A program made the translations under genes and the position numbers. DNA of 64,000 bases, taken from assembly GCA_977016875.1 (NCBI GenBank), contig CDRNST010000015.1:4774001-4838000 (forward strand), read 5' to 3'. Numbering within the stretch: position 1 is the stretch's first letter; each line of letters starts with the position of its first letter. Below the pieces are notes generated by a model. That model did no database searches, was not told the origin of the DNA, and saw nothing but the letters and a program-made list of their open reading frames with translations. Positions 4,164 through 64,000 of this stretch are shown piece by piece. Source of the DNA: Pavona decussata. Taxonomy: Eukaryota.

Positions 4164-4602
4164 ATGCAGCGTGAAACCTTCGCTACCAAGGATTATGCTT
4201 TCATGTGTTGGATCTCATTAGCGTTGTTTCCCTCATCGCATGGGCAATTCTGTTCTTCAAAAGGTTGGTACTGTTCATTACGTAAGATAAAGGTAATTAA
4301 AGTCGCACTACGAGCCTAAGTTGCCCGTTCGGCCGGAGCTTAACCAAGTTTCTGTAGCAAGAAGCATTTGGGAGTATTGCTACTCCACCCTGAATGGGAT
4401 ATCAGTCCCTTGTAGGGCTACCCCCAGCAGAATATCGCGGGTACCCATTCATACACCTGGGTGTATAGAGACAGTGTTGAACAAAGTTTCGCTTGAAGGA
4501 AACAACACAGCAAATAACCGACCAACCTTACTTCGAAACACTGACCATTCGATCTTCCAATGGTTCTATCGATAGTCCGATAGTCCGTTGTTTGAGCACT
4601 CA

Positions 4603-4635
<33 letters not shown>

Positions 4636-7600
4636 TATTCCGACGCTTTATAAACCACTAAACCACCGCGCCTCCACACCGCTAATTAGGTTAATGTTTA
4701 TTGCTTTATTTTGCACAATTCAACAATAACGTTGATCTAACGAACATTTTTAAGGGGCGCCAAGGTATTCGCAACCCTTTGACAAAAGATAATCGTAGAT
4801 CGCCAACAATCCATACCTTGATCAGGCTCTTCCCTTGTATTTTCCTTTAAATAGTTCCTTAAAGATGCAAGGCACGTATTTATATATCTAAAGAAAAAAT
4901 ACAATCTTTCGGCTGCTGTGAAAGATGATAAGAATTAAAACATCCAGAATTGTACGTAAACAGTTGTCGGGGTCGAAAAACTGATAAAAACTGTGAAATG
5001 GTTGTTGTTTAGGACTGGGTTACATCAAAACAACAATTTTCGGAAGCTTATACAAGTGACAAATTTAAGTTCAACTTTCCAAAATGCAGATCTGATGTTG
5101 GGGTCTATGTAAGCAAGGATATTCATTTGGAGCAAAACCTTGATGAGAGGATCGACTCAGTGTTCGGCCGCTTTTGACAAGTGTAATGTTTTGTTGAACT
5201 TTTCCAATAGCAAAACGTTAATTTCAATCTCAAAGCTTTCAAACAATAGTTGCGATGTCGCTGGAGGGAAAAACTGCTGGAAATAGCTTGGGCAATAAAT
5301 ACGAACACACAACTTCCCACTTATAGTAGGCATCCGGCGCCACTCGACAATTTTTTAACCAAAAATCGTAGGTGAGAGAAAACAACCGATGAACTAATTC
5401 ACACAGATTGATCACTACAGATATGTCAAGCTCGAAATGTATAAAAATCAATAACGCCAAATAATTATTTGGTGCATGTTATTGACTTGAATTATGCATT
5501 TCCAACTTAATACATTTTTGCAATCATTCTAAGTGTACGATTAAGACTATTATATAACGGCTTTGATAATGCTTGGTCAGTTTCAGAATTTTTTAAATGA
5601 TAATGTTTATTATAGTCGCTAACTCTTATGAAGGAATTACTCAAATTGGGCGAATTGTTTATTTAAGATTTTATAAATTAAGACTAATTTCAGGTGTTTG
5701 CGTTTGGTATCAAGGGTTTTCCAAGTTAAATTGGCAAGAATATCAGTTGACCGAATGTCTTATTTCGCACTAATTATCGCCATGCTGGCTTGAGATTGTA
5801 TGCGTTGCAGTTTGTCCTTTAACGTCCGGTTTTGTGTAGGTGATGGGACTAATGATTATATATTACTTCCAGTGACTGGTTGGGAAAAACGGCCTAAAAC
5901 GTTTTATGACCGCGATACGACCGCTCGCCTTTTAACATATATTGTTTATAAATAATTATGCTTTTCAAAAGTACGTTTGTCATCAATATGAACTTCTTAG
6001 CAAGTATGCGAATCGACTCGTAATAGTTTGTTATTATCTGTAAGAGTATCATGCAGCTGACATAAGGTTTTATTGTTCAGTTTATAGGCCGACATAGATT
6101 TAAAAAAATTGAACAACTCGCACTAGAAGTAATTTGATCTCAAAACTGCAGAAGATTGGCAATACAGTTTTTTTTCTTTTGTACCGATTCTTTTTTCCGG
6201 TCAAGATATCTTTTTTTGTATAAACTGAAATAAACAAGGTATGCAAACGCTCAAACAAAGCCGCAAATTAGCGGGTTAGAACGGGAGCAGGTGGCTTGTC
6301 AGAATAAATGATTGGTCTAACATTTATATGCATAAATACACGCAAAGATGCTTTATTATTTTAGAATGGTTTGTTCGTGTTTTTATTTATTTATTTATTA
6401 TTATTTTTTTTTTTTCAGTTTGAGATACCGTAAAATTTCTGTTAAACACTGGCGCCTATTTATCTTTAGGCCTCAAGAAGGGGACTTGTTAGAGAGGCCG
6501 TGGCTTAATAGATGGGGCTTATCTTAAATCATGAATTGGACACAACCCTAAATAAGCATTTCCAAAATGATATTGCACATCTGACAGAAACATAGCACTA
6601 ATGGCTTGTGGACCGCGAATTCAAAGCCTTATTTTGCACAGACTGATGTTAACAGTATACACTCTTCTTAACAAGCTAAGTGGCTCATAAGCGTGAGCTA
6701 AATGCCATATTTTTGTAGCAGGTGAAGTCCTAATTTTATGTGAATTCCTAGATACACAGAGAGATGCTTTATTATTGGTTTATGATTTTTTTCTTTTGTT
6801 TAGGAGAATGAATCCACTTTTCTTGGCCATCAGTTTGACATACAAAATGAGAATTCAGCTAGACGAACTCATTTCAAAATGCATTTCACTTTGGCATTTG
6901 CCATGTAACGAACTACTCTAGGTTTCACGCCTGACTCGATACTAATTCTTATTTTTACTCGTGGATATGCTTTAGCGTCACGAGTGATAGAGGCGTTCGG
7001 TATGCAAATGAATCACTCACTCCCGTGTAACCGGAAGTGGAATAATAGCCAATCGCACGTCTGAAAGAAGCGCAGCCAGAAATACGTCTGCGATCGCAGG
7101 TTAGATTTCTGTGGGGTTTTTTTAGTGCTTTGAACGCAGTCTCGCTGCATTCTTCATCATTAGAAGCAAATGTCTGACGAACTGACAAAATGGTGTTCTT
7201 CGAAGGAGAAGCATAAGATTCTCAACAAATGCACATTGATACAATTAAGAGCGATTGTGAACCGCCTCCACTCACCGAGGCGTAAATCTTGATGTCGAAG
7301 TCGAATTGACGGTAGGTGAGAAGACAGAAGTTTGTGACCTTTCATTTATTCTCGGTTTTCACGTGACGTCACCAAAATCTAGAATTCAAAACTGGGAGGC
7401 CTATAAAATTTTTACCTTCATTCAAGGAAAGATTACCTAAAAATATGTCGGTTCACAATTTCTTAGCTCGATGTCGTGCTTTCTTTTGAAAATAGAACAG
7501 TTTCAATTTCCGAGTTTCCATCGTGCGTGACATAAGGAGGACGGCCGTGACAGAGCTTTTCCGTATCTTAAAAATGACTCTTCGGGTGATTTTCAGCATT

Positions 7601-10600
7601 CTAAACAATTTAAGTTTAAGGAGAAATATTAATCTAAACATTCGAAAATTCACAAGGGCAAACAAACCTCTTTTCTGGGAAAAGTGAACTCGAGATGTTT
7701 TTTCGTATTTCCGGCCGCCATGTTTGTGCCCCTCAGAGGGCAACTCCATACTAAGCTCTATAAATTTATGTGGAACATTTTGTCAAATAACTCGAGTACG
7801 GAATGCCGCACAGACCTGACACTTAGAGAGATGCCTTATTTATTTATCCTCTATACCATGTCAATTTCTTGACTTCATTCATGGAATGGTTTCGATTTTT
7901 TTTTTTTCAATGGCGTGACAGTGAAAACCGAGAATTGTTGAATTATCCGTTGAATTTTCTTTTACCACAAGCACATACGAATAATTCCGCTATGCTCAAG
8001 TACTCAAGACGAAATAATTGAAAATTTTCTTTGCCGCACGCGCGTCGCGTCGGGCTACGGAAATATAATTGTTGACCATTGTTATGAGCGATGTAATTAC
8101 CACTTTCTGCTTCATTTTACCGTAAAGAAGCCTAACTTAAAGAAATAACAAAGACATTTGAGCATCACAGTTGCCTTTCAACACCGTTTAGGAATACTTG
8201 TACCATTAATATCGGTGGAACAAATTTGCATATCCGTGGTTTACGGTAAACCAAGAGGTAAACTGAATTTGCGCGTCTCCGATATTATCATTTAGTTTGG
8301 CAAATCAGAGAATCTAAACCTTCTTTGGCTTTAAGTGAACTCGCCGTTTTCCAGAGCCGTAAGCTATCCGTTCGGTACCTGTCCGTTGCTTTATGGATTA
8401 CTTTTATCTTACTCAGCGAAATCATGCGTTTATTGCATCGAAATCGCTTTCGGTAAGTTATGCGAAGTACGACTGAGGGACACGAGCATGTGAATGTCAG
8501 TGTGCTTATTTTCATCTGGTGCAGTCACAGTTTAACTTTTTAATTCATGAGTATTTTCCCGTCATGAATTTATTTATTTTCAGCGTGTTTTACAAAAACG
8601 GGGCAAGTTTTTAATAAACTAACATCATTCAGAAAGTATTCTGTTGCTGCTTTAAAATGACCAAGATATAAAAATTAAATTCTACAGTTGTCGGAAAGCT
8701 ATTTACATGTAAGGAAAATATTTTGAATATCCTTCACAAATAAGGCCTTGTGCCTTGTGTGATCGAGACCTGAAACGCAAAATCTTCAAACTCAAACCGA
8801 TCCATTCGACCAAAACTATACGAAAATTCTGGTACAAAATCAAAATGGAACGGCAATTTTCAAAAAAGTCAGCTCGTTACGAAATCTTTTGGCATTTCAT
8901 TTCGATCAGACACGGCTCTAGCTACTCCAGCAGTGATCAACATTAATTGCAAATGAAATGTGTTTCCGTCTTACTCCACCCCAGATGCTTTAGAATTCTT
9001 TCCTTTAGGTGTTTGCTTTGATAAGAAGAAAACATTGCCCCTTCCATTGATCAGTCGTTTGGTAAGTCAAAAAAAGAATTAAGTGAAAATATAGTTGATG
9101 GAAAGTTCTGTTTCCTAAAACTGTAAAAATGCTCCATCGATATCGTGGACGAACAGAATCATCCATCGAGGACGATTACCAGCCCTTTGAGGTTGAACGA
9201 AGTAATATCAAAGAATAATAAGCACCAGGCACAGAGTGATGTCTCGCCCTCAGATTTCTAGATCACGCCATCTCGCACTCGGATTTTTGATGTGCCACGT
9301 TTGAAAAACTAGATTAAGTCTCACCCTCGGATTATAAAAGAGAGTCTTGGCGAGCCTCGAATTTTTCCACTATACCCCCTCTGGAAATATGTTCCTTAGG
9401 TCACCCCGCTCCCCACTGAAAAATAAGGCAAACTGACCACCTTCCCCCCTGTAAAATCAAATCCCTCCGGTGAGGGGGTGGGGGAGGTATGGATATTTTT
9501 TGGTACTACACATTCTGTTTACCGTAATCCAGCCCTCAAAGTAAAACTACTTACCCTTAAATCTGGTCATATAGGTCAAAGAAATCATTCCACCAGTATC
9601 AAAAGTATTTTATTAGGTGAGGGACTGGGGACATCCACCACAAGGACAAATTTGAAGGTAGGAGGCAGCCACAAACAGTGCTGCATGACATTTGAATCCT
9701 CAAAACCAAAAAAAGAAATGGTGACGCCTCCCCCAAGGACATAACCAAAATGTGCCTTCCTTGTTTGATTCCTCCTTTACCCAAATACGTCAAATTTTTG
9801 TGAGGCTAACTCAAGTCTAGGGGACGGACCATTAGAAAAGTGATGGGGGGGGGGGGGGGGTGGGGAAAATACAAAAAAAAAAAAAAAAATTCGTGCAAGC
9901 TAAAATGCCCCAAAAAAAAAAATTCTTGCAAGCCGAGAGGGAAGAAAAAAAATTCTTGCAGAAGGAGATAAGGAATTATTATAGAAAATACCTTTTAGTG
10001 TTTTAATGACAGAAAATTTCTTCCAGAATGCCCCAAAATGGCCTTTTTAATGTTTTGAAAATCTAACTTTTTTTGTGGAAGTTTGTTTTGCACGAACAAC
10101 AAACCAGCCCCACATTTTGTGTCTTGGCTGGAATTTACCCTTACTACAACTCAGTATTTTGTTTTGTGTTTGTAACTGGTAGTAAACCCAATGATCACGA
10201 GCAATAGGTCAATTAGTTTTGAAGAAAAACGATTTTGTCAGTAAAACGCTTCCAGCATATCAGCTTATCCATAAAGCGCTTTGTAGTTTTATTTGTTGGG
10301 CCACAGAGTGCTTTATCGTTACAAAATTTAAAAAAAAACTGAGTCATTTTCAAGAAGTCCTGTTAAACGCTTGTAGGAGCATCTAGATTGAAGGGCAAGT
10401 GTTCACTTTATTCACCCCAAAATGCTCTGTGGCTCATTGTCAATACCACAAAGTGCTCTGTAGGCAAATTAAAACCGCACAAAGTGCTTTGTGATCTGGT
10501 GATCGAAAGTACCTTGTATCTTGGCGGGCACTATAGAGGCGCGGTGGTGGTCAATGGAGTTTGGCATCATTATGATGGACTGTGGGAGAGGAACACAAGA

Positions 10601-13334
10601 GGGAAGGGACTGCAAAAATGTACAGGGAAACCATGCACCCCACAAGGCTTCCTCCTTTCACACTGCGTTTATATCTATGAGAAGCTTTTGCAGTAAATGT
10701 ATCCTTTAAGTATGTTTAGTAAAAGTACAGTGTGTATGAGAAAGGCACACGTGGAAAGAATTGAATAGTTTCATTCATCAGCATCATGTTATAACGAAAG
10801 TGTTAAAGAGACAAATTCTAGTAATAGTAGCACCAACACATTAATGAAACATTCTACAAAAATATTTTTAAAAGAAGCAAGATCATACATATAAGTCTGA
10901 TCATATACAAAAAGATATGATTTGCATTTTAACCATTGTGATATAAAGTAAGAATCAACATTTCGCTGCGCTAATGATACTCTATCGTGTATAAAATGAA
11001 AGGGGACTGTGTCTGTAGTAAAAGAGTATCCATGTAATATTAAGCAAAAACATTAACAATCCCACCATGAATTTGACTTTTAAATTTTAAGTAAATTGAG
11101 ATTATATACTACTTGAAGTGTTTGTTATGAAATATTTCATAAGATTTCTAGGCGCCAACAGTTTTGAAAAATTTTGAATCAATTGTTATTAAAATGTGTT
11201 AAAAAGTAAACAATCAATAAACAGACAGTACATGAAATTTGATTTAAATTATTTTAAAATGTTGACCAGTCTTTTATTTAAGTATGAGGCTGATTTTACT
11301 ACCAGCACTAGATACTACTTAGACATTAATTTCGTTGTTTTTGTTTAGTTTTGACCATCATGCTGTAATTTTTAGATATTGTCTCAGGGGTTAAAGGTAA
11401 TCATTCCAAGCCCACAAAGTACAATGTTTTTTGAAAATCCTGTATTTAAAGTTTTTTTTTTTTCTGGAAAACAACAACAACAAAAAAAGTCGTGCAAAGG
11501 GTATCAACCGAAAAAAAAAATTCCTGCACAAGCACTGAGCAAAAAAAAAAATATTCCTGCAAACTGAAAATCCCCCCCCCCCCCCACCCCTGTTACTTTT
11601 CTAATGGTCCGTCCCTAAGTGGAAATGTGCTGCCCAGGCTGTCAAACCCTGACCCTGTTTATGACAAAAATATCTGTCTTCTCTCTCTTAACCCAGTTTG
11701 TGACATGAATTAATTTTTCGAAAAAAAAAAAAAATATATAAATTTCTTACATTGCTAATCCGTTTTTACAATTTGTAGATAGTCAGAGAAAAATAGGTGC
11801 ATTCCTTCCCCCCCCCCCCCCCACCCACCCTCCATGGGGGACAAACGAGTGAAGAGCTCCAATAGCGTCTCCGCCATTACATTAACGTCACTATTAAATT
11901 TCAAAGACCATTCCAAACTATTATACATTTACGCCACCTTTTAGTTAAACCCATGGCATCAACGGTCACTTCCATCGCCATATCCACGAGTTAACGATAG
12001 TGTCACTTTGATTTCCTTAGAAGACTGTCGCCAACTTGAATTTAAGCCTGCACATACATTAGATGGTAAACGCCTCAAAGGCCACATGATTCGCACCGAT
12101 GACGTCATGGATAGCGATTTCTGTGAAACATTATGCTACATGGAGCCCAACTGCGTTAGTTACAACTTGAAGAAAACGCCCCGCGTAAATGGCAAATTTG
12201 GCTGCGAGCTGAATAATTCAACCTTTGAAGGGCAAAAGAACAAACTGGAGCCAAATACAGACTATATTTACCGCGGAGCAAAGGTAGAAATGAGTAGTTG
12301 TAATAAATTGAAAATTGATAAAATGTTTGATGAGAGAACTTGTGAAGGTTGAAAAAAAAGAAACATCAAAAAAAAAGACTGGAACTCAGAGGTCTGGTTC
12401 ACATGAGCAGCGCAAACGCAAGCAAGCACGCCTGTGAACTACGCCAACGCAAATACAAACGCAAGCTTAAGCGCCAGAGCAAGAAATGGAAAATATTTCG
12501 TTTCCTTGGGCTTGCATTTGGGCTTGCGTTTGCATTTCACACTTGTGATCCGGGGCAAGGCAAATGCAAGCGCAAACGCAAGATGAAACATATAGTCGTT
12601 CCATATATATGTACGGCTGCTGACGTTCAAACCAAGATGGCGTCCTCCTCTGCCAGTTTTAAAATCGTTCCCAGAGTCCTCGCTTCCTAAATGCTGGTCT
12701 ATGGTGACGATACCTCTTGGAACAAGATTGCCGCTACTTGCTATACTGCAATGCGCGTGCTTATCTCATTCTACTTGCATTTGCGTTCGATGCTTGAACA
12801 TCACTTGCGCTTGCGTTTGCGTCGTACGTGTGAACCAACCTAAAGCGAGGAGAGAACTCTTAGATAACCTCCGTCTCAGAAAACGAGATTTCCTTTGAAA
12901 TCATACAAATCATGGTTAAATCGAGTAGGAGTATTTTTTGCCTATCAGTATTATCAGTATTCCGTAAAAATGTTAGCAGTATAACGGGTATCTTTACGAA
13001 ACTGCAATAACAATAAAGAATTGTTAGTGGTTCCCAAGTACAATCTTGAAACTTATGGAAAGCGCGTTTTTTCAGTCTTTGTACCCCCACACGCTTTGGA
13101 ATAATCTACCAGTTGATATAACAGCTATAGCTTACTTAAGTTCTTTCAAAACGAGAGTTAAGACCTTCTTCATTAGTCGTCGCTTTTAAATGTTACTTAC
13201 TTTGCATATGTTTCTATATTAGTGAGTATTATACCATTTTGGTAGTTTTGTTAAGCGCTATTGGTTAACTAGTGGAAATAGCGCTATAGAAATCAATACT
13301 ATTATATTATTAACCAATATCAATATTATTAATA

Positions 13335-13415
<81 letters not shown>

Positions 13416-16400
13416 CGTTATTTTCAACCCATAACGCAAGGTCCGTAACATTACTACCACACATGCGCACTGGCTGCTAATCAATAATAAATAACTATAA
13501 TTTCTAATGACACACAAGACGTGTTCAGACCAGTGATCTTATTGGAAACTTGGATCATCATTTTGCAGCCAGTTTTGAGATATTGAGTAATTGTTATGTG
13601 TGTCATTTTTCATTTAATATTTGCTCGTCTGTTTGTCTTAGAAAGCATGTTTGAAGAAGTCTTGCAAGAACAATGCTACCTGTGAAACAGGTTTTACAGA
13701 CAAAGGATACCGCTGTATGTGCACCACTGGATTCACGGGTTCTCTCTGTGAGACTGGTATGACTAGTTTCTGATTACAGTACTGATTATCCTGTCTGATT
13801 TAAAATACTTAGCTTCGACGTCAAGTACGCGCACGCTACGTGACTTCGGTGTAACATACTAACATCTGGGTATTCTTCACCATGAATAGTAGCCTGAGTA
13901 TAAGGCTTTTCGGGGAGGGGGGGGGGGGGGGGGTGAGAGGGAGGGAGGGAAAAAAGAGAGGAAGGGGAAAAGTTCTTTATTTGTATATAAGTATTCTCTC
14001 CTCCTCCTCCCCTTCTCCCCTCCCGTCCTCTCCCTCTCCACTTCTCCCTCCCCTTAGGAAAGCCTGATACTCAGGTTACATTAATAATGGAACTTACCCT
14101 AGAACACCCTTATTTTTTTTATGAATTTTATTCAGCACGATAAGAACGCATTACAGTCACATACAAAACTTGCACATACTTACTATTTGATTAAACTATT
14201 TACATGTCTTATAATAAACAGTCGTACAGTAAACTGGCTTTACACTGTATGGTTAAAATCCTGCAGGCAAAAAAGCCACATATTCGACTTCTTCATTCTC
14301 CTTGACAAACGACGTATATTTTAAAATCAGTCTGAGCAAAAAAAAAACTAACCTTGTTCGGTTGTTTTCTTTTTTTATTTTGTCGAGAACAAGACCACTG
14401 TGTAAAGAAACATACTAAACTTCCATGGGTCTAATGAACAAATTCCTTTTGCTATGGAAACCTCTCCTCTATTTATCATAAATGTTAGATATCAACGAGT
14501 GTAAAACTGGAACACACAAATGCAGTGCCGTAGCTGTGTGCAAGAATACTAACGGATCATACCACTGTACGTGTAAGCCGGGATATTACGGAAATGGACG
14601 AGACTGTGAACCAGGTGACGTTTTGGTTTGCTTTTGTCTGACGTTTTCCTTTCCTTAAGGAGGAATCTGCCTACAGTTATTTCTTTTCTCATATAACACA
14701 ATGTCGATAGAAGTCAAATGCATGTTTTGTCTCGTTTGCTTTTTCTATTTCTGGTACGGAAAGTAAGAAACTCAGAGATAGTTTGCTAAAAGGCAGTATA
14801 CAAGAAGATTATGCATGATAATGATGCTCATTGCCATAGCAAAGGAATCAGTATCCTCTTAATTGATGACTTGTCTAGGCCCAGGTATCTTTTGAATTTA
14901 CTGTTGTCTTTCTAGCTTTTCCTTTTCTTTTGCCCTTACAGCCGTTTCCTCAGGGACAGCTAAAACAATTATTTGGAACGTCTGCTCAAACTCGTTCGCA
15001 GCCAACAAAATCAGGTCTCCTTGCTCCAATCTCATTATAGCCTTACTTTTTCTTTGTTAGCAAAGACATTTTTTCTTCAAGGCTTTTAGAAAACCCAGTT
15101 TAAACTACACACCATTACTTTAAATTTAAGGGACAGTTGTGGACGTGTTGTGCGTTCTTTTTTTATTTGGTTTAAAATATCCTTTTCTTTCATCTTCATG
15201 CTGTGACGTAGTCCCGACATGCAAGGATATTTATAACAAAAATATGTAAGTATGAAGACCTCCAAAACTCAAGGATATACCTTAACTATTTTATTTTTGN
15301 NNNNNNNNNNNNNNNNNNNNNNNNNNNNNNNNNNNNNNNNNNNNNNNNNNNNNNNNNNNNNNNNNNNNNNNNNNNNNNNNNNNNNNNNNNNNNNNNNNNN
15401 NNNNNNNNNNNNNNNNNNNNNNNNNNNNNNNNNNNNNNNNNNNNNNNNNNNNNNNNNNNNNNNNNNNNNNNNNNNNNNNNNNNNNNNNNNNNNNNNNNNN
15501 NNNNNNNNNNNNNNNNNNNNNNNNNNNNNNNNNNNNNNNNNNNNNNNNNNNNNNGTGAGCTTTGGCCGTAGAAAGTAGGTCTTAGGGATGATTTCTATTC
15601 GGGAAGCGTGAAATTTTCAGGAATTTTTTGACCCAGCCAAAGATATGAGGTGGAAAAGAACGTTAACCTTCCCTTTTTCAAATCTTGATTTCAACATCCG
15701 GGACTTAAAGTAATATGGCGAAATACAAGCAAGATTTGGCAAGAGTTGAGTTTCAAAAGCTATTCGTCCTGTATCGTTGTTAGGCCAGTGATCGATTAGT
15801 CGAGAAGTGCGATTTTAAGGGGTTTTTCCGCTCGCGGGTGTCATAAATAATTTCCTGCAGATGTTCGATCGCCATGATTCTAATTCGCGTGCAGCATGAA
15901 TATGGTGTGAAGATGAAAAATCAATTTGAATCGCTGTCTTCCTCTGATATTAAGCCGATTTTGTTGTAGAAAGCTAGACTTGAGTGCTAAAAGACCGGGT
16001 TTTGGGTGAGATTTTAGATGCGTTGGCGCGGTTAACTATTGCTAAATTTTAACACATTTTGTAGTTTTGTAATTCACGGGTTATGTTTCATTTCATGCCG
16101 ATATCAGTGTCATGTCTAATTCCAGAGAAAAGCCCCCCCTTTTTTTTCCCTCCCATACTATTCCCTGACCTCACTTAAATTCTTGTGATAAACCCTAATT
16201 AAAGTCTTGTTAATGACTAGCATATTCCTTCAGCCTAGAAGGTCTCAAAATGTGCCCGATTTCAATTTTATCCGTTCTTGAATTGTTGCATAATTGTGAA
16301 AATCTCTTTTCTGACATTCCCCTTTCAGCCAACCGGTATTATTTCATGATAAATTACTCAAGCTATAAACATGAATTGAAAAGGCCCAGACCTGTCATAA

Positions 16401-19400
16401 TGGTCAGTCACAGCTTCGCATCATTGTACATTTCCGCTAACTTCAGCTTCCCACTTCGCTACTTCGAGTACCGCTACACGAGGCTTGTCACGCGGCAATG
16501 CAATGCAGTGACGCTTAAAATTTAAAAATCTTCCCTGCCTGTACATCCACTCCAAAGTGGTATTCAGCGTATTTAACTAACGGCAAGGTAATTTTGAAAT
16601 ACAAGTCCAAACCCATGTTAAAAATCGGCTGCTTTTTATCAGGTTAAGCTTATTCGCGAATCCTTTCTTGATTTCCTAAACATATCGTGTCCAGTTGAGT
16701 TTGTTATCCACTGTCACTCCTCAAGTTTTGAATTAAGGGGGAAGTGCGTTCTAGAGGACCAGTAAAGCTATGCCGTTGTGATAACTAGCTAGCTAGTCCC
16801 CCACCCCAAGGAGAGCGAAGCCATGGTTATCACAATGACAAAACTTTCCTGGTCAAGTTCTCTGAACGCACTGTCCTTTACAAGACGTTTAGGCGCGTTA
16901 TAGTGAGTTGTATCTGCACCGTGTACCGAGCTCCTCAAGCGCTCTGCTAAGAAGAGCTGTGACCTCATCCACAGAACTCCTTGAACAAAACAATTCTGCG
17001 GGTATCATCTGCGGACATATACGTTGATCCTGAGATAACAACATTGGGTAAATTGCTCTGGCACAATTTTGTGAAAAGATTTGGGGAGAGAACAACACCT
17101 TGCGGGATGTAAGAGGTGACGTTGGAACCGTATCAGACTTCACACAGTTGACTACCGTGTATTGCTTTCTCTTTGTTAGGTAGTCTGTCAGCCAAGCTAG
17201 CTCAAAGACACTAGGCATTGACATTAATATTGGCAAGGAAACAATTTTAGCGAGGGATATCATGTTGTTTTATAAAGGCAGAGAGGCTCATATTGATATT
17301 GCTAGATTTTAAAGGCATCTGCTTTGGCCAAACCCATTGACAATTGAGAAGTATACACTTGACAAAGTTTTAATTTTTGCTATTAAGCCAGAGTTTCACA
17401 CTTTCAGCATCTTTAGTAGAAAATCAGGAGGGGAAAGTTGAAACGGGAGGGGGCACAATACTTAACAATTATTCCACTAGAGCCTTTTGGATATGAGATG
17501 ATCAGATAGTCATAGAGGCGCGTAGCGCCGAGCTGGCTACATATCATTTCTTATCCAACAAGCGTGAGTGAAATTACTGTTTTATTAAAAAAAAAATCAA
17601 GAAGTATTCAATGCTAGATCGTGTCGATTTCGTTTTGCAAGAACAACTAAATTAACTGTTTAAACAGCGCAAGGCCCTGTAAGTAAGAAAGGAAGTACTT
17701 ATTTTCTCGATTAAACGCCCCCGGCGTTTATTTAAAATTCGGCCATTTTGACCCGGCGTTTTTTCGAGCCAGCGTTTAATCGGGGGCCCGGCGTTTATTA
17801 ATAAAGTGCGATTTTCAGCCATTTTTCCAGGTTGATTTATTATCACCGATCCTTGGAAACCTAGGGGCAGTTTGTCAGTGCTGGACAATTTTTCCCAGGA
17901 TTATCCAAAGTTACAGTATTATGGTACCGTACGTACGGCACGTGTACCATGTTGCAATCAAGCTTTGTATCACTAACAAACAGCACATAAACAATATATG
18001 AATGATGTAGGAGCAAGTAAATGATATGAAAGCAGAGTTTTAAGCTTATAAACGGTAATGTCGCCAAGGTCCTCCTCGCTTGTGTTAGCCAATGTGTGCA
18101 AATTTCTTAAGTTTTAATTACATGCTCATAAACGCCGGGACCCTGATCAAACGCTGGGGCCCCGATTAAACGCACCCGGCGTTTAGTTAAAAATCGGCGG
18201 TTTTGACCCGGCGTTTATACGAAGCCGGCGTTTAATCAGAGTCCGACGTTTAATCGAGAAAATACGGTAGTCTTAATATGAAGTGAGAAAACGTAACAAC
18301 ACATAAGGAGTTAGGTGGATGGGTGTGTTATTTGGCATACAATGAGGTTCATATTTAATTTTTCGTCTACGGTAGCGAGGTAAAGCCCTATTGTTCACCA
18401 CCTCTCTCCCATTTCCTAACCCCCTCCTCCCTTACCACTCCTGTTATTTATTGCACAGTCCCTATAAAAGAAGATAGAAAAAACGCTATTCAGTATCGTA
18501 TAGAATGTTTCCAGTAAAGATCGTTATTCAATGTAAAAGTATTCTTATGTTTTTCTTAGGACTCAAGTTAAGGGGAGAAACGAATACAAAATATATGTAG
18601 CATTACCAAGTTTGTTATTATTATTATTTTTTTTTAATATCAGGACCTCCCAAGATAACAAAGCCTATTTACTCCAAATGCCCTCTGGAAAAGTTCCTGT
18701 GTACTGTCACATGTCAAGCCATGGGCTTGGAGCGTGTGGAGGAGGCGGATGGACGCTGGTCATGAAAACGGATGGCAATAAGGTATCACATGACAACCAA
18801 CTGTTTGCTGTATGTAGGAATATGGACATCAGTCTTTATATACGAATTAAGAAGGTCACGAATACGTTCTTTGTACCTTTAATTACGAGTTCTATGAGAT
18901 ATTTGGATCGCTCAGTTTAACATTTTCATCCGCACTCCGGAAATCGTTCAAAATGTGCTTTCTCAAGATCCTTAAAAAACGTTAATGGAAGTCATGAAAG
19001 TGATTCGAGAAACTCCGAATTCTTTCAAGGCAGATTTATCAAAGTACGCTTTCGGCTATTGTTTTTTAAAGGTGGATATGTGAATGTGGATAACGTATTG
19101 TAATTTTCCTACATGTTTTCCTTTATTTTCAACAAGCCAACGTTTCACTTCAATTCTAAACTCTGGAGCAACCGGGACGACTTCAACCTTACAGGAGGAA
19201 AGACCTTGTTTGACAAACATGAGACAAAGCTACCAACCTACTGGAACACATCCTTCACCAAGATATGTCTCGGCATGAAGATCGGAGATGAGACAAGATT
19301 CATCGTCCTCTCTAAGCGCGCTAACTCCCTGTACTCACTGATCGCCGATGGCCATTACCGCGCCACCTCACTGGGACGTAACACGTGGAAGTCGTTGATT

Positions 19401-19894: not shown

Positions 19895-20029
19895 AGAACA
19901 ATGAGTGAATGTATAAATCTATCGATCAATAAATTAAAGTTTTGTCTTTCAAAAAGAGCGAAATCGCAACACATAAAATCTTTACTGGCTATGTTATTCT
20001 GAACTCCACCAAGACACGTGTATGTAGTT

Positions 20030-20688: not shown

Positions 20689-20775
20689 TAACTAGTATCT
20701 TTATGTAAGAAATAAAATTGGTGATGGGACTGACGTGAGTGGTAAGAGTGTTGAAAGAAAAGAGAATAACTAGGA

Positions 20776-20780
20776 ATATT

Positions 20781-20819
<39 letters not shown>

Positions 20820-40665: not shown

Positions 40666-40747
<82 letters not shown>

Positions 40748-51212: not shown

Positions 51213-54200
51213 ATGGCCAAATGGTGGCTAAATACTCTGGCCTTTTTGGCAAGTTTGAGCTTACTTTTATTCGCATTTGTGGTGGCAAACTCTGACTTCT
51301 GTGGTGCTGTTTATGAATCTCAACTTAGTAAGTAGACTAAAGATAATCACTCTGTTATGTCCTTTCTTTTAGTTTGTCCACATGCAAACATAAAATGATT
51401 CTATTTCTTTTTCTTGACAGATCATGCTCTAGTCGGCCACGCTATTAAAACGACTGTTGTTTATGACGAGTTCGAATGCCAGCTAAAATGCATTGCCAAT
51501 GGTAGTTGCAAGTCATTTAACGTGCACCGAAGCAGTTCCAAAGCAAACCGCCGCATTTGTGAGCTAAACAACAAAACTCGGCAGATGAAACCAAAAGATT
51601 TCAAACCGAAGAAAGGATCGACATACTATGGCTCTGTAAAGGTAAGACTAACCAAAATACCTGCGAGTGGTTGGAACGTGTCATGACTAATCCGGGACCT
51701 TAACATTTGAATAGGCCTACAAGATTAAGGAGATAAATTCCAANNNNNNNNNNNNNNNNNNNNNNNNNNNNNNNNNNNNNNNNNNNNNNNNNNNNNNNNN
51801 NNNNNNNNNNNNNNNNNNNNNNNNNNNNNNNNNNNNNNNNNNNNNNNNNNNNNNNNNNNNNNNNNNNNNNNNNNNNNNNNNNNNNNNNNNNNNNNNNNNN
51901 NNNNNNNNNNNNNNNNNNNNNNNNNNNNNNNNNNNNNNNNNNNNNNNNTAGATAATGGTATTAAAATTTGGGTAGTTTGGCGCAACTAAGCATTCAGCAC
52001 ATGAACAAAACGGCAACCTTGTACGCCATGAAACGTAAGGAAAAGAAAAAAAACTGCCCCAAAGGTTGCTGGCTCAATTTTTTTTTTTGCTACTGATCAG
52101 TCTATGCCGCTTAACGCGAATATTTTATGGACTGCTTGTTCGCGACGCTCTCTATGGGTTTTCCACCAGTCGGCGGCTAAGTCATGTTCAATAAGGTGTG
52201 AGAATTCTGGAGTCTTCAAATGCCCAAAACTAGAGGTTATTTTACTAGTTCATTTTATTTATTTTTTATTTTATAATTATTTACTCTTTTTTTGCATAAT
52301 CTCTCTATTCCTTTCATACAAAAGAATTAATAGGCTATTTAGATTTATCGCATTTGAACGAAATTTGGCGTAATGTTCGTCGCACATCAATGCACCAAAT
52401 TAGTATTAATAATGATTAATAAGTGTAAAGGTTTATTTGCTGGTGGGTACAAGGTGTGTCGGGCTTAGTATATGAGGCCGGGTAGAATTAAGGATAAATT
52501 TTCACGCGTATTTTCAAAAGTTTCCCAAATTGCCCGAATTGCGCAGCGACGAGGGCAATTTGCAAAACCTTTAAAAATACAAGTGACAATTAATCCTCAA
52601 TTCTACGAGGACTCGTTGCGATTATGCGTTTATAAAATAAAGGGCAAAATGTTCTTAAAACTATCGAGGCACTTCGTAAAACACTAAACCCCGGCCTGGC
52701 GTAAAGACACTTGCCCGCGTAAGCAAAACAAACAAAAAATTCACATGTTTCTTAGCGTACAAAACAGACAAAACGAGAAAAGTTGATTATTATAAAAATA
52801 GCAAACGGTGGGTCTCGCAGAGCAATTTCTTCCACTGCATTTGACCAGCTCCTTCCCCCCCATCAAAAGGGCACTGTTATCATGGTTCGGTTATCGTTCG
52901 TTGGAAGACGAACGAAGTTTTTCAACCAGACATTCGATCAAGTTTTTAGCTTTTGAAAAAAATAATCCTTACTGTTTCTTGTAAGAAACGAAAGTTCATC
53001 TTTAAGAATTTCTTTATAACTGTAGCACTTGATTTCCAAGTACTTTTGGCACAAACAATCCGGCTTAAATAGTCGAACTCAAAAGAATCTGAAAGAATTC
53101 GTTGTTGCTGCAGCAGAAGAAAACAAAGAACCCGACTAAATGTAGAAATGGCGCGCTCAGTCAATGAGGAGCAAGTATTTCCGTCGCTGGGCCAATTAAG
53201 AGTGAGTAATTTTGCCCTCGGTGAAAGGAAAACAAAGAAACAAACGCCCTCTGTTTCGACCAATCCGCATTCAGTAATTTTGTCTTCTATGTTATAAAAT
53301 TTCAAAATGCTCAATATTTTTCCTTTGGCGTCTCAGCGGATGACAACCATCGAAAAAGTGTACAGACCATTTTCTTAGGAACCAATGGAAATATTAAGGA
53401 AGCCTCACACACTTTGTTAGCCTATTATCTTCTGATTGATAAAGTTTAGTTTGTTTGGATATTTGCAATAACGCAAAGGTTCGTAATTCACTTCAGTAAA
53501 CAGTAAGTTACTCAGTTTTCAGTCTAAAGGGTTCCGCGCTCCTATATAAACAAAATAGGCTTCAAAAATCTCTATTTCAGATTATTCATTTAGCTTTACG
53601 GTTAAATATTTGAAACCCGATGCAATTTGCAGGAATGTCTCACATATTGCAATTCACTCACAACACAGGTGTCCTGTATTGACAGTGGCCGACAGCGCCA
53701 TGGAGAGATGTCGACCGCAAGTAGCGGCCACTGTCACCCGGGATACGCAGGGAAAAAATGCGCTGGTAAGTAACACTTCTACATTCATAAGACGGGTAAT
53801 CATTATACTTTTAATGTTTAGGCTTGAACAAAAAAAAATCCTTGCCTGGCAACCCTTAATCTCGTGCCCAGTTGTTTGTCTTCGTATCCGAAGAGTGAGA
53901 AGATTTTGGTACGAGATTAGGCAGCCCTAAGTGAAGTGGTAAGATTGTAAATTGAGACCTTCAGGAAAACACAAAGGAACAAGAAGCTGTAGACAGCTTG
54001 TACGCGAGGCGCCTTCAACATTGGTACTCATACGTTGTAGTTAGGTTCTAGAAAAAGGCGAAGAACTGCTACATATATCTTCAGCTTCGATGAAAGAAAT
54101 ATAAAACAGTACAAAAACCGTTTTCAAAACTTTTTTTTTAACTGTACAGTTTGCAAGATCTTAGCCTAAAGTTTTTTTGGTTTAACATTCCCTTTGTTAT

Positions 54201-57200
54201 GAAAGGTGTAAGTGTTGGTTTCGGAGCCGTGTTCGATCATCAAACTTGTATTTGTTTCCCCGAGGCAAGCGCAAATAACAATCACTATTTAAATAGAATT
54301 TAATGCCGGATGAGAATATGGATTTATTGACCACTCACTGATATCATTTTCTTTGTTCACTAATGCCTTGCAGTAGCCATCGGTTCTCATCCAGACCATT
54401 CCGCTCAGTCATGCAAACACATCTGGGACGTTGGAATCTCCAACAAAAACGGATGGCACTGGATCGACCCCGAGAGAACTGGCAACCCTTTAAAAGTCTA
54501 CTGTGACTTAACAACTGATGGAGGTAGGTCTGGGATAACGCTTCTCTGTAAGAGACACTGAAGCCCCCCCCCCCCCCCCTCTCTTCCCCCACCGCTGCCC
54601 CCCAGTAGGGTGAATGCAATGGCTCCTGGACTTAACATCTAATGGAGAGTGCAATGCCAATGGCATGGGTTCACCACAAACAGAACTGAGGGCACCAGGC
54701 CGCCAAATTCGACGGGGCAAAAAAGCCTCCCAAAATTGTGCCCAAATGAACCATGTGTTTCTTGCACAAAATAATCAGCACGTATTCCATGCAAAGAAAT
54801 GTCAAAGAACACATTTTCATCGGTTCTTAGTTTCCTAAGGTTTAACCCGTGCACCCTGTTTGGGTTTAACTAAAGTTACCTTCTGTTGGTTTTGATCTTC
54901 CAATTTCTCTACTATCGTTACATAACCAAAATAGTTATTTTATAGTGAGCATTGTCTTGACCATAATTAATAGCCTTTGTGTGACCCTAGCACCATTTAC
55001 GTTCTTTTGTTTTGGATATTCAAAGCGTAAATTGCTAGACAAAAACAGAGGAGCAATCACACTACCAAGATAACTCACTACAGTTACCACTGTCTTAAAC
55101 TGAAGACCAAATATAGTTCCTCGCGAAGCGAGTTTAATTAATTTGTTTGCCGGAGCTAAGCAGCGCGAGTTCGAGCAAATATATATATATATAAACAATA
55201 ACACAAACTGCAAGGCTGATACTATGTGAAAAAGTTGACTACAATAGCCTGCATTTGGCGCGAAAATATGCTCAGATATTTGTACGCGGACATTATCTGT
55301 TCCAAAAACCTTACTGATTTCCGAGAGCGAAGCTCGAGGAAAACTGTGAGCTTCGAGGAACAGATAATGTCCGAGGGAAAATATTTGAGCATAGCTTTAA
55401 AGTCAAATGGAGGCTATTGTGTTTATTGTCCTTCAGATATTTTTCGCAACACGCGGGATCTGCCAGTCTGTCATATGTCAAGCACGTCAACGTTTGTCAA
55501 TTGGCTTTCAAAATCCCCCCGTCTTTCAATATTCAGATTTCTCTTCAGTCAAAAGCATATGATTGTGGAAAAAGTACAACATTTGCCTGAAAGGAAAAGC
55601 AACTTTTTTAATTCCGTGAAAGAAAAAGGCAAGATACAAGTGGTGGATAAGGTTACAGGAAATCTTACTACTTTTCAACAACAACCATGGGAAACATGTT
55701 TGATAAGCTCACATCTGCCATAAATGCCATTTCTCAAGGAAAACCCACCGTCAAGCCTGGTAAATTTTGCGTAGATCATAATGAGAAAGATTGGCGCGCG
55801 CTTCTCGCTTCGAGTCTCCAAGCGGAATTCGAACAGTCGGCGATGAACTGGGTCGGCTAGGCTTGTGGCGCGACCGCGCATATAGAAGGGAAGGGTTGTT
55901 CCTGTGCTTTTGTCTTAACGTTTTTCTACCGTTTTCTTTTTCGCAGGAAAGCCCTTTGTCTCGTGCAAGGAAATTTACAATAACCACAAGTAAGTCAAAA
56001 ACATTTTGGAGACAACCGTTGTCTCAGGAGCATTAACCCAGGAGATGCGGAAGCGTTAAACATCTTTTATTGATTCTACGTCGATTTTAGCAGTTATATA
56101 ATAATGGCACAACTCAAAATATGTTAAAGGAGGGATATAATGTTTTTTTCATGCACGGCTCATACTGATATTGCGAAATTTTTAACAGAGCTGCATTTAG
56201 TGAAAAACCTGACAATGTTTTGATTTTTATGTTTTTAAGCGAGCGTTTGGCACCTTTGCCATCTTTGGAAGCAGATTCCCTCCATATCTACGTAAAAAAG
56301 GAAGGAGGGAAAAACTAAATTCATTAACGCCGCAGTAGAATTAAGAATGCTTACAGATATTTGAGGAAAAATCGTTAAAAAATTTAAGTAAAAATTGGAA
56401 TTTTGCCACATTTTTTTTAAACCTTGAGGTGAGTGCAGAAAGGAATACAATTTTCTTGTTACCAGGTCCCAAGGAAACGAAGCTTATTTACTCCAAATGC
56501 CATCTGGAAAGGTTCCTGTGTACTGTCACATGTCACGCCATGGGCTTGGAGCATGTGGAGGAGGTGGATGGACGCTGGTCATGAAAACTGATGGCATTAA
56601 GGTGTCACGTGACAACCAACCGTTTGTCTTTATGTAGGAATATGGACATCAATCTTTATATACAAAAGAAGATCACGTTTATGTTCTTTGTACCTTCAGG
56701 AGCTGTACGAGATACTTGGATCACTCAATTTAACATTTTGACCATCCGCTCTCCGGAAATATAATCGTTCAAATTCTGCTGTCTCAAAATCCTTTGAAAA
56801 TGCTAATAAAGGTCATGAAAGTGATTCTAGACACTCCGAATTCTTTCAAGGCAGACTTATCAAAGTAAGCTTCCAGCTGTTGTTTTTTAAAAGTGGATAT
56901 GTGAATGTGGTAACTTATTAAAATTTTCCTACATGTTTTCCTTTATTTAGTCACCCAGCCAACGTTTCACTTCAAGTCCAAACTCTGGAGTAACAAGAGC
57001 GACTTTAACCTTCCAGGAGGAAAGACCTTGTTTGACAATCATGAAACAAAGCTACCAACCTACTGGAACACATCCTTTTCCAAGATCTGTCTCGGTATGA
57101 AGTTCGGACATCAGACAAAATTCATTGTCATCACCAAGCGCGCCAACTCCCTGTACTCACTGATCGCCGATGGTAATTACCGCGCCACCTCACTGGGTCG

Positions 57201-57477
57201 TAACACGTGGAAGTCGCTTCTCGGTTCTTCTGCATCCTTGCAGTCAATGTGTAACAAAGAAGGGTTCAACATTGTGGGTCCCAATGCTGATTCCCCCAGA
57301 GCCAGAATCGGCATCGTTGCTAATGAACAAAATGACTGCAATTCTCCTGATTCCAGAATCGGTTTTGGTACTGGAGGGTTGCACGACGACTCCAACACGT
57401 GTGGAAACGAAGCTATGTATGGAGGAGATAACGGAGATAAGCACATCAAAGCCATGGGCTACATTCTGGTGCAATAA
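51213..57477 (+). CDS. Gene D: secreted PAN/Apple - partial EGF - COLFI/FReD-type 'SCKHI..WIDP..VYCD' module - USOMP5-like domain, ~426 aa; exons 51213-51327, 51421-51641, 53669-53765, 54374-54523, 55947-55989, 56466-56601, 56959-57477
   Basis: Signal [25 protein letters not shown]; PAN HALVGH..ECQLKC..CKSFN..CELNNKT; [10 protein letters not shown]; [35 protein letters not shown]; [15 protein letters not shown]; [20 protein letters not shown]; terminal exon homologous to A and C. Phases are compatible throughout (1281 nt). N gap at 51744-51948 in intron 2; joining of the two halves is inferred. Confidence 0.7.
55240..55426. repeat. Palindromic interspersed element in the gene D junction intron
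   Basis: ACAATAGCC..GGACATTATCTGTTCC..GGAACAGATAATGTCC..GGCTATTGT. Confidence 0.7.
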
Positions 57478-60717: not shown

Positions 60718-63700
60718 ATGAAATTGATTTTAATGCTTTGGAGTACAATCGAATTGTTCCCGCGGATCCACGGGCAATTCTGCAGTTCACAAGGTCGGTA
60801 CATTCCGTTAGTTAGTCATTGTTCAACACTAGTAAGGTTTATTGTGATCATGGCATGGATGATTAAACGATGGGTTTTGAAACTGAATGAAACTTTATAA
60901 ATAATACCTTGCAATCCTTGTGATAAGTTAGTTAAAACTTTTTACAACTAGGCCGACAGTTAAGATTTTGAAGAAACTACTTCTGCGTTAACTAAGGTAA
61001 ATTTTTTTCTTGAAAATTGCAACGAATCATCGGTATAGCGATCCAAAAATAGGGTGTTCGCAAAGGGCAATTTGTCGAGCAAGACTTTTGTGTACGAAGT
61101 TCCGCTTGATGATCACGTTTTGTTCTGCGTGTTACCATCTCCGTGCGTAAACATCAGCAAGTTTCTACACCGCAAACGTAGACGCCGGTAGGGTTGAATG
61201 CCAACACGGCCAACCAAATCCTAGTCTTATACTTGAAACTAAAGCAAAGTGGATGGTAGAAGAAAAAGCTTAGTACCAAATGAAAACCTACATGGCTCAA
61301 ATTGCAAATTACCGCGGGCGGCAGCTCTAAATTTTAGCAGGTGATAATGTAAGTATTTTTTAGTTAAAAAAAGGAAATCCTTAACAAAAAGCCCGAAACA
61401 GTTGTCCGTAAACCTTAGCTAAGAAACGTAGTTAGCTTTCTTAGCTTTCAATACCAGTTGTTATTTTATAATTTTCTGATGTTAGCCCGTGACATTTTAA
61501 CGTAGAATGAGAAATTAGGTTGGTAGTAAAGGTTGTAAAACTAAAGGAAAGACTACCATCGACAGCGTGAGTAGAATGTCATAAAATCTCGCTGGTGGCT
61601 TACTGACATTGACAGTAATGATACATGCTAATTACCTTTGGCTGATCTTGTAGAAAAGTTAGCACGGAGAACTTTAGTGATGTCGATTGAAAGCTTCCCT
61701 TTCATTTAAACGGCCCAAAGCAGAATCTGGGTTTAGCAGGTCGACCATTGTCTCAAAAGGCAAAAGTAAAACGAGTGCATTATATCGTTTGCCACGTAAT
61801 TAGTTTTCTTTCCATGATAAAGTCTCTTCTAGCAATATGAGCTTTAATATTTACTTTTTCCAACATATTTGTATTTTAATGTCAACTCTCCACTTCTCAG
61901 ATGATTGTCGCCAACTGGAGTTCATGCCAGACTATAATTATGATGGTAAACGTTTAAAAAATCACACTATACATACCGCTGATGTCATCGTGGAAGGTTC
62001 GTGCCGAACCCTCTGCTACATGGAACCCAACTGTGTCAGTTATAACTTTTTAAAAACAAAAGCGAGCCACAATGGAAGACACCGCTGTGAACTGAACAAT
62101 GCTACTCATGAAGGTGCCAGACACGACAAGCTGGTGAACGAAAAAGATTTTTTCTATCGTGGAGCAAAGGTAATTGAGTTTTGGAGTTACTCAAGTGTTC
62201 GTATAAGCGCTGAATTTAGTTGAACGATTATATTACTGATAAGGTCGGGGCACAATTGCAATGGGGTTCAGGAACAGTTTTTCTCGTTTAACGTCGTCAA
62301 TTTTATGAAAACAAATCTCCCTGAACATGTTGCATAAAATTTCGCTTGTTTGCGTTACTGCGCTATGAAGCGGAGACAATTAGTGAACCAAAATGTCCAA
62401 TGTCGCATGCCGTTACAAAAATATTGCAGTGCACACGAAGAGGAATGTGCCCGATTCATGTTCGCTAGTATACACCGACCTTAATGGAGTTTCAATAAAT
62501 CAAATTTAATAATTATGTGATGTCTAAATCGAAATATAAGGGATGTATTCTCCTTCTTTTTTAGGACACTTGTTTGAAGAATTCTTGCAAGAACAATGCA
62601 ACTTGTCAAACAGGTTTCACTGACAAAGGATATCGCTGTGTATGTGCAGGTGGATTCAAAGGAACGCATTGTGGGGAAAGTAGGAATCTTAACATACTTT
62701 GTTTGTCTGTTTGAACACAAAAATCTAAATAAATCACCATACAGTTCACTAAATCACAAACAATTTGCTTTTAAGCAAGCAATCCTCTTTGACTCTTAAC
62801 AAGGCTTAGATACAAAATTACCCAAAATGGGAAAAAAATATTGCTGGAATTTCCCCCCCAAAATTCTAAAATTCTTGAAAATATTTCTAAATTCTGGAAA
62901 AATTTTAAAACAGTTGATATACATTTTAATAGTATAACAAAAGCATAATGAAGATGTAACAAGAAGGCTGATAACCATAAAACAACTGAAAATTAATAAA
63001 TGGTAAACGTGCGACCATCAAGTTATGGATGCATGCGGAAGATTGCTAAACACGAAAGAAGCGTGAGAATCGCTCGAGGCGTAGTCGAGAGCAACTCTAG
63101 CTGCTTGAGCGCTTAGCAAACCTCCCAAGTGCATCCATAACTCGATGGTGACACAGCTGTATGCGCTGTCGTAAATGCCATTTCTCAAGGGAAACCCGCC
63201 GTCAAGCCTGGTAAATTTTGCGTAGATCATTATGAGAAAGATTGGCGCGCCCCTCTCGCTTCGAGTCTTCATGCGGCACGGTCGGCGATAAACTGAGTCG
63301 GCTAGGCTTGCGGCACGACCGCGCATATAGAAGGGAAGGGTTGTTCTTCCGTGTAGAATAAGTAGGAAAATCTCTAGCTCCAAATGTATTTTTTGCCTTT
63401 CTTTCTGTGCTTGTTTCCTAACGTTTTTCTACCGCTTTCTTTTTGGCAGAAATGTCCTTTGTCTCGTGCAAGGAAATTTACAGTAACCACAAGTAAGTCA
63501 AAAATTCTGGAGAAAATACTTACTGTTGTCTCAGGAGTAATAAGTAAGGAAATGCAGAAGAGTTTAGCATCTTTTATTGCATTCTTTGCCGATTTTAGCA
63601 GTTATACAATAATGGCACATCTCAAGATATGTTAAAAGAGGTATACAATGTTGTTTCATGCACGGATCATACTGATATTGCAAAATTTTAACAGTGTTGG

Positions 63701-64000
63701 CTTTTAGTCAAACACTTAATAAAGTTTTTTTTTTTTTGTTATTCAGCGAGCGTTTCGAGCCTTTGGCATCTTTAGTAGCAGATTCCATCCAAATCTACGT
63801 CAAAAGTAAGGAAGGAAAAAACTAGATTCATTATCGCCGCAATAGAATGCTAACAGATATTTAAGTAAAAATTATTAAAATATTTAAATAGAAATCGGAG
63901 TTTTGTCATATTTTTCTTAGAGCTTAACCAAAGTGCAGAAAGGAATACAATTCTTTTTTTTATCAGGCCCCAAGGAAACAAAGCTTATTTACTCCAAATG
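60718..64000 (+). CDS. Gene E (runs off the window): signal-PAN/Apple-EGF-USOMP5-like; exons 60718-60793, 61901-62169, 62565-62679, 63450-63492, 63967->64000
   Basis: MKLILMLWSTIELFPRIHGQFCSSQ is homologous to exon 1 of A/C; [24 protein letters not shown]; [19 protein letters not shown]; [15 protein letters not shown]; [11 protein letters not shown]. Phases match. No cbEGF exon seen. Confidence 0.82.
63016..63148. repeat. Palindromic interspersed element in gene E intron 3
   Basis: CATCAAGTTATGGATGCA..TGCATCCATAACTCGATG arms. Confidence 0.7.

Follow-up and report, generated by a model that had tools for sequence, protein, structure and literature searches.

What do the tandem genes in a stretch of the genome of the coral Pavona decussata encode, and how might their products work? 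The stretch (64,000 nucleotides, hereafter the window) is contig C15:4774001-4838000 of a 602-Mb assembly, and an earlier note on its sequence had described an array of spliced paralogues there. That observation is confirmed as real, and the window is a five-unit sample (60 kb) of a larger array with at least 25 genes on contig C15. Our reading, to which we give a probability of about 0.72, is that the window forms part of a >400-kb one-strand array of USOMP5/'egg-protein-like' genes, whose secreted proteins carry a head of intelectin fold and act by lectin-like binding.

Five units, termed A, B, C, D and E, lie in the window, all on the + strand, as do all exons given below. A, C, D and E are intact-looking genes, with E running past the window end, and B comprises exons 1-5 only. 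Mapping was homology-guided and followed by splice-site inspection and then a frame check; exons were searched individually, and the joined frames were checked by script for length and stop codons only. All placed introns are GT-AG with phases consistent throughout. The earlier description of five co-oriented spliced paralogues holds as to the number of units, their strand and their splicing, but not for B, which is no independently diverged paralogue. Each gene is predicted to yield a protein with a signal peptide, a single PAN/apple domain and up to two EGF modules, ending in a domain of ~230 residues and roughly 8 cysteines that would be a very divergent fibrinogen-related domain (FReD) with the intelectin (X-type lectin) fold. 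Such products would be soluble secreted proteins instead of the receptors proposed in the earlier note.

Identity and predicted fold of the C-terminal domain

Across the last exons, identity with proteins of Porites lutea and Oculina patagonica named 'skeletal organic matrix protein 5(-like)' is 71-75% (E about 1e-80), which bears out their designation as USOMP5-like. Direct Pfam and PDB sequence scans gave no match for the last exon, nor did a PDB profile search from a shallow alignment, and no window exon matched Pfam Fibrinogen_C (PF00147) over its curated cut-off. Weak matches to Pfam GON and DGF-1_N lay under threshold and were discarded. Among 50 family members PF00147 matched a single one (E 0.007), and more distant relatives pass it over the first ~60 profile positions only. 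A profile of 56 diverse domains of the family matched 59 solved fibrinogen (FBG), intelectin and collagen C-propeptide chains. The intelectins gave the lowest value (E 2.9e-9), with fibrinogen chains, angiopoietins, tenascins and ficolins also in a range that extends to 1e-5. The match is confined to positions 3-61, the segment with the SCKEI..GGGWT motif. A C...Y.L......V.C.M...GGGWT subdomain is encoded by exons 5-6 of A, C and D and by B's copy of exon 5; for gene E only the first part of the C...Y.L...GGGWT motif falls inside the window. Language-model neighbours of the domain are clusters named fibrinogen C-terminal and intelectin-1.

An AlphaFold model made with closely related sequences was unusable (predicted local distance difference test score, pLDDT, 59.8) and was superseded by a run with the 56 diverse domains, in which the domain of the Oculina homologue P0034:60-290, 72-75% identical to the window's last exons, reached pLDDT 96. 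In a Foldseek search with this model, ranks 1-6 were all intelectins (E 3e-7, template-modelling (TM) score 0.55-0.60), followed by FBG domains, and among the matches listed 50/50 were fibrinogen-related proteins. VIA-align gave Z 15.7 with human intelectin-1 (root-mean-square deviation (rmsd) 3.3 Å, 207/231 residues) and Z 7.7-8.6 for fibrinogen gamma, ANGPTL3, FGL1 and H-ficolin. The ESM Atlas cluster 'Skeletal organic matrix protein 5' matches the domain at TM 0.97. From the Foldseek ranks and the VIA-align Z scores, the modelled C-terminal domain is a divergent fibrinogen-related domain of intelectin type. The AlphaFold and Foldseek check suggested in the earlier note, run on the Oculina homologue domain, thus found an intelectin-like fold. 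Its statement that the motif starts fibrinogen-related and intelectin domains agrees both with the profile matches (E 3e-9 to 1e-5) and with a whole domain that models as intelectin-like.

Outside animals, too, the coral head has relatives that are unusually close, among them Myxococcota DUF4215 proteins (TM 0.91, rmsd 1.4 Å) and phage proteins (TM 0.85). The long metagenomic proteins P0125, P0126, P0144, P0161 and P0170 are 34-46% identical to it across the whole domain, and two of them bear bacterial-type motifs (MopE in P0161, He_PIG in P0170). The close Myxococcota and phage structural relatives (TM 0.85-0.91) might reflect an old bacteria-animal transfer.

Structures of genes A, C and E

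Gene A (4164-19655) has 7 exons encoding 437 amino acids, with two exons for the C-terminal domain. Exon 1 (4164-4281) supplies the start codon (ATG 4164) and signal peptide; it has phase-1 donors, including an alternative one at 4263, and shares homology with exon 1 of both C and E. Exon 2 (12021-12283), bounded by splice sites, encodes the PAN/apple domain. It is followed by an EGF exon (exon 3, 13642-13756; Pfam EGF E 5.5e-7; phase 0 to 1) and a 126-nt calcium-binding EGF (cbEGF) exon (exon 4, 14489-14614; Pfam EGF_CA E 1.6e-11). Exon 5 (15212-15245) is a 34-nt micro-exon that starts the FReD (TCKDIY), recognised by motif scan and splice context. Exon 6 (18644-18782) encodes the FReD A-subdomain (VYCHM...) and was placed by tblastn to USOMP5-like proteins and by its splice sites. 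Exon 7 (19137-19655) holds the last 172 residues of the FReD and the stop, and is 74% identical to the Porites/Oculina USOMP5-like proteins.

Gene C (34020-44216) likewise has 7 exons and encodes 438 amino acids with no internal stop, with Pfam EGF and EGF_CA matches. Its exons lie at 34020-34137, 37283-37545 (PAN), 38796-38910 (EGF), 39855-39980 (cbEGF), 40546-40579 (micro-exon), 42987-43125 and 43695-44216. Gene E (60718-64000), mapped by splice sites, frame check and Pfam, is cut by the window end. Exons 1-4 are complete (60718-60793, signal; 61901-62169, PAN; 62565-62679, EGF; 63450-63492, 43-nt micro-exon), the penultimate exon 5 is represented by its start (63966-64000), and the last exon lies within 429-968 nt past the window end (window-equivalent 64456-64968).

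A and C thus share the build signal-PAN-EGF-cbEGF-FReD, and E has the same build without a cbEGF exon. D has its own signal peptide and its own PAN domain, plus a 97-nt exon. Found in A and C and not in E, the cbEGF exon forms a symmetric cassette (phase 1-1), which supports the cassette-exon exchange proposed earlier. The EGF and EGF_CA modules are matched by Pfam, as are the PAN domains of A, D and E (PAN_1 22.0, 36.2 and 25.0 bits; cut-off 21.4). The PAN exon of B and C scores 18 bits, under the cut-off, yet is 86% identical to A's exon. Micro-exons, 34 nt long in A, B and C and 43 nt in D and E, encode the SCK(E/D)IY motif and, by motif scan and splice context, have a strong acceptor and a GTAAGT donor.

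The window contains three N gaps, all intronic or intergenic. Neither gene A nor gene D loses its reading frame across a gap, and in paralogues 88-98% identical to the window the sequences on the two sides of each gap align collinearly. Gap 1 (15300-15554) interrupts intron 5 of gene A; in a paralogue of 90-96% identity its flanks stand 222 nt apart. This is where paralogues have a (TTA)n microsatellite, and since the start of the gap matches that site by homology, the repeat is the probable cause of the assembly break. Gap 2 (49340-49525) falls between genes, ~1.7 kb before the start of gene D, and its flanks are 550 nt apart in a paralogue of 96-98% identity. Gap 3 (51744-51948) interrupts intron 2 of gene D and is bridged by an RNA joint; the spacing of its flanks in a paralogue is 184 nt. 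Introns and intergenic DNA also contain open reading frames that by eye resemble retroelement reverse-transcriptase tails (29945-30349 +, 41468-41872 +, 48331-48612 + and 16898-17263 -).

Gene D and its transcripts

Gene D (51213-57477) has 6 exons that join in frame to encode 376 amino acids, with evidence from RNA contig joints and from Pfam (PAN_1 E 5e-9). Exons 1 and 2 encode a distinct signal peptide (51213-51327) and a divergent PAN domain (51421-51641). Exon 3 (53669-53765) is the 97-nt exon, followed by the 43-nt micro-exon (55947-55989) and exons 5 and 6 (56466-56601 and 56959-57477). The RNA sample consisted of three coral metatranscriptomes (X1-X3) and X5, a same-species run whose RNA label is a guess; the evidence is in the form of assembled contigs, which bear neither expression level nor strand. 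Between 6 and 8% of sampled words of 51200-57200 are contained in the four runs, approximately the exon share of that stretch. Spliced transcripts had been suggested as a test of the gene models, and X5 contigs show three D junctions, 51641>53669, 53765>55947 and 55989>56466, all GT..AG. These joints confirm the 43-nt micro-exon of D. The joint of D's last two exons was not seen among the X5 contigs.

Exon 3 was revealed by the RNA contigs alone, having been missed by homology and by the earlier model. It is Cys-poor, with three cysteines only and an EGF-like tail, and has no Pfam match. In the X5 transcript no exon lies inside gap 3, as 51641 is joined directly to 53669. Two candidate models of D, one with the PAN exon spliced straight to the micro-exon via an alternative acceptor at 55952 and one with an EGF exon hidden in gap 3, are ruled out by the 51641>53669 and 53765>55947 joints.

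Chimerism had been proposed for D, and its treatment as a unique chimera is rejected here: its signal, PAN and 97-nt exons are found as a set at other places in the array, and genome-wide there are at least 25 copies of its PAN type, 88-97% identical. Judged from these sequences, gene D is a member of a recurring subfamily and no fresh chimera. Several D-type genes have an A-type PAN exon ~1.1 kb 5' of their D-type one (C15:4578361/4579459, C15:4673222/4674320, C225:1011104/1012010 and three places on C94). The upstream exon has a stop codon at most of these places, not at C225. Such A-type PAN relics suggest that D-type genes may have arisen by insertion or replacement within an A-type gene; no relic of this kind was found ahead of gene D in the window.

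At 55687-55759 lies a candidate alternative first exon that brings an ATG of its own (24 codons, phase 1). An X5 contig, deeper than the PAN-containing form, splices it to the micro-exon at 55947, and its donor is conserved in gene E (about 63,210-63,230). This form would be a short isoform without signal peptide or PAN domain, and the contig could stem from a close paralogue. Intron 2 of D also contains a dispersed repeat (52406-53410) with >1200 candidate copies in the genome and an RNA contig depth of thousands to tens of thousands in X1-X3. We take this repeat for a probable non-autonomous transposable element rather than a part of the gene. An Rfam MIR837 match in a D intron was far under the gathering score and is taken as chance.

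Family size and turnover of the array

At least 324 candidate last exons were located in the genome, in arrays on many contigs. Of these 150 were scored, all with E < 1e-70, so that the family has at least 150 and probably >320 copies in this genome. Worldwide, an exhaustive search gives 2039 clusters at 50% identity. On contig C15 the array extends for >400 kb on one strand, from about 4.428 to 4.845 Mb. In the half of it covered by a survey of gene types, three types recur and interleave: A-type (PAN, EGF, cbEGF), D-type (own signal peptide, own PAN, 97-nt exon) and E-type (PAN, EGF). A direct check of copies found in-frame stops in 4/25 last exons of the C15 array. The gene at C15:4722860-4730550 is a mosaic: between its 5' flank and the end of intron 6 it is collinear with A and resembles it (90-96%), whereas the penultimate and last exons resemble C (93%), most clearly the last one, which is only 81% identical to that of A. 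Neighbouring genes have thus exchanged sequence. Relatives elsewhere join the same head to coiled coils, collagen, pentraxin or Cys-rich modules.

Our data are consistent with a model in which the family grows and changes via unequal crossing-over within arrays. This process would generate young duplicates such as the B/C pair, mosaic genes, gain and loss of exon cassettes, and pseudogenes. The 4/25 last exons with stops, a very young duplicate and the mosaic gene support the earlier proposal of a birth-and-death family.

Variation in the loops of the head

The family had also been called diversifying, a label that the data do no more than suggest. Among 21 intact last exons of the C15 array, the whole-exon pairwise ratio of nonsynonymous to synonymous rates (dN/dS, omega) has a median of 0.35 with none >1, and the scaffold outside five variable patches has omega 0.18-0.25. 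The variable patches all fall in loops between C-terminal strands of the P0034 model. One of them, the hypervariable loop P1, lies between two strands and corresponds in gene A to residues 105-114 of the last exon (19449-19478; alignment columns 107-117). Over its 10 residues omega is 1.7-2.7, in a loop picked after the data were seen. Its dN over the overall dS has a median of 2.7 and is >1 in 92% of pairs, and tree-based counts give 79.5 nonsynonymous and 11.5 synonymous changes (omega 1.9, P = 0.017). The loop thus changes at the neutral rate or somewhat faster. Because P1 was chosen post hoc, has indels that make its alignment uncertain and belongs to genes that recombine, positive selection on it is suggestive only.

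A neutral origin of this variability, with unconstrained recombining loops on a constrained scaffold and an array that expands through unequal crossing-over without selection for diversity, is one alternative, and we regard it as a serious contender that falls somewhat short of an even chance. It accommodates the frequent pseudogenes, the lack of any whole-exon dN/dS >1, the omega of 1.07 for all variable patches pooled and the uncertain alignment around the P1 indels, and the P1 excess (P = 0.017) fails correction for the post hoc choice of window. It accounts less readily for P1, where dN is larger than the genome-local dS in 92% of pairs (median ratio 2.7), and for the one codon that survives Bonferroni correction.

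Unit B and the 11.5-kb duplicate

Self-comparison of the window reveals two tandem copies, 19913-31403 and 31412-42926, that are 11.5 kb long and 99.97% identical; 3 transitions and one (TTA)8 change in length are all that sets them apart. Each copy consists of the intergenic DNA following A, exons 1-5 and most of intron 5. The first carries the gene B exons (22521-22638, 25784-26046, 27297-27411, 28356-28481 and 29047-29080), which are open and end in phase 2; the second carries exons 1-5 of gene C with most of intron 5 and stops 60 nt short of the acceptor of gene C exon 6. Unit B has no complete product, as the C-terminal-domain exons are absent. A (TTA)n microsatellite directly follows the micro-exon in both copies (29140-29220 and 40640-40745) and provides their sole length difference, of 8 repeat units.

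There are two possible accounts of B, and with it of the 'truncated' architecture: a partial duplicate of very recent origin, or an assembly artefact in which an 11.5-kb segment was falsely doubled or two haplotypes were placed in tandem. The artefact is the less probable of the two but a tangible possibility: three substitutions and one microsatellite length bring the copies far closer than other paralogue pairs in the array, the closest measurably diverged last-exon pairs having dS 0.035-0.05. Against this, three transitions and a repeat-length change fit real sequence and not read error, 8 nt of filler separate the units at their junction, unequal crossing-over is otherwise evident in the array, and coral haplotypes are usually much more divergent than these units. 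The kind of differences, transitions and repeat length, leads us to favour a real duplicate by a modest degree. If real, B could serve as a second promoter and exon block feeding C's last two exons.

Possible functions

How might such proteins work? We propose a lectin-like mode, in which the intelectin-like head would bind a ligand, probably a glycan and perhaps in a Ca2+-dependent manner, via loops of its C-terminal third. These putative ligand-binding loops would be the parts that differ between copies, and PAN and EGF would supply a further binding module and a spacer. The proteins may serve in contacts with microbes or symbionts, in the egg coat or at the skeleton. Several observations weigh against this proposal. 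No Pfam model reaches threshold for the C-terminal domain, sequence similarity to intelectins and fibrinogens spans only ~55 residues, and the alignment with intelectins ends before the region of the Ca2+/ligand-binding residues. The fold rests on an Oculina homologue rather than on the window's joined protein. Spliced RNA was obtained for D only, from contigs of a run with a guessed RNA label, and the evidence for positive selection is weak after allowing for the post hoc choice of loop. The known contexts of the family, skeleton matrix and yolk, need no recognition role.

An alternative is a structural or storage role in skeletal organic matrix, yolk or extracellular matrix, where the head would serve self-assembly or mineral/matrix binding with no discriminating repertoire. 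The presence of USOMP-5 in the skeleton proteome (PMC3748352), the inclusion in the family of Euphyllia and Galaxea 'egg proteins' that are upregulated in ovaries (PMC4890752, PMC7579821) and the typical occurrence of PAN and EGF in matrix proteins all agree with such a role. We nevertheless consider it less likely than not, given that hundreds of divergent copies with loop-focused variation of the head are unexpected for a bulk structural protein and that the nearest solved fold is a glycan-binding lectin. Structural and recognition roles can coexist, and vertebrate intelectin relatives include an egg cortical-granule lectin. The most far-reaching possibility is improbable on present evidence, namely that stony corals possess a germline repertoire of several hundred intelectin-like lectins, with loops lining the ligand site and diversity kept by selection, as a main system of microbe/symbiont discrimination, the skeleton and egg members being co-opted offshoots. 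If true, those offshoots would have a parallel in vertebrates, where gut intelectins and the cortical-granule lectin of the egg have likewise parted ways.

Comparison with known systems

USOMP-5 was found in the Acropora skeleton and described as an orphan protein (PMC3748352). Acropora homologues have been named EP-like because coral egg proteins and a single Nematostella protein have a conserved part in common with them (PMC4890752, PMC7579821 for the egg proteins). The Nematostella protein v1g248548, aligned with USOMP-5 in PMC4890752, belongs to the same family and has the UniProt label 'fibrinogen C-terminal domain-containing'. A 2022 structural-proteome paper lists USOMPs without known domain (PMC9673494), and in the literature searched no paper ties USOMP5 or the egg proteins to intelectins. 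Both are cited as uncharacterized in many coral transcriptome and skeleton-proteome papers, of which the searchable ones give no domain or mechanism. The modelled intelectin fold would give the USOMP5 family a likely mode of action and turn an orphan into a glycan-binding candidate, as do its hundreds of copies, tandem arrays and loop-localised variation. The weight of this is limited by the fact that databases already tag some relatives as 'fibrinogen C-terminal domain-containing' and that lectin-family expansions are familiar among invertebrates. The genes offer a set for studies of coral-microbe/symbiont recognition, the egg coat and the skeleton interface.

Of the systems compared, the mollusc FREPs offer a loose analogy only, which tempers the likeness drawn in the earlier note. 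FREPs place immunoglobulin superfamily (IgSF) domains upstream of a canonical FBG domain, whereas the window genes have PAN and EGF modules, no IgSF domain and no canonical FBG domain. Canonical FReD proteins (ficolins, tenascin and angiopoietin FBG) share the superfamily fold (Z about 8), modular N-terminal partners (collagen, coiled coil and pentraxin in relatives) and large germline expansions in invertebrates. They differ in that the coral domain fails PF00147, its C-terminal two thirds are unalignable by sequence and the family shows no sign of diversifying somatically. The USOMP-5/EP-like and coral egg proteins are the direct sequence family of the window genes, although many published members have coiled-coil N-termini where the window genes have PAN-EGF. 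Intelectins (human intelectin-1, Xenopus XEEL and lamprey serum lectin) are structurally the closest, with a match along almost all of the domain. In both groups sequence similarity to fibrinogen is limited to the first ~50 residues, and both are secreted, in the coral by prediction. The coral domain is only about 15-17% identical to intelectins, has 231 residues compared with ~280 and is fused to PAN and EGF modules. Copies number in the hundreds in the coral, compared with 1-31 in other animals, and the 'intelectins' of placozoans are also short and form an expanded cluster (PMC6321704).

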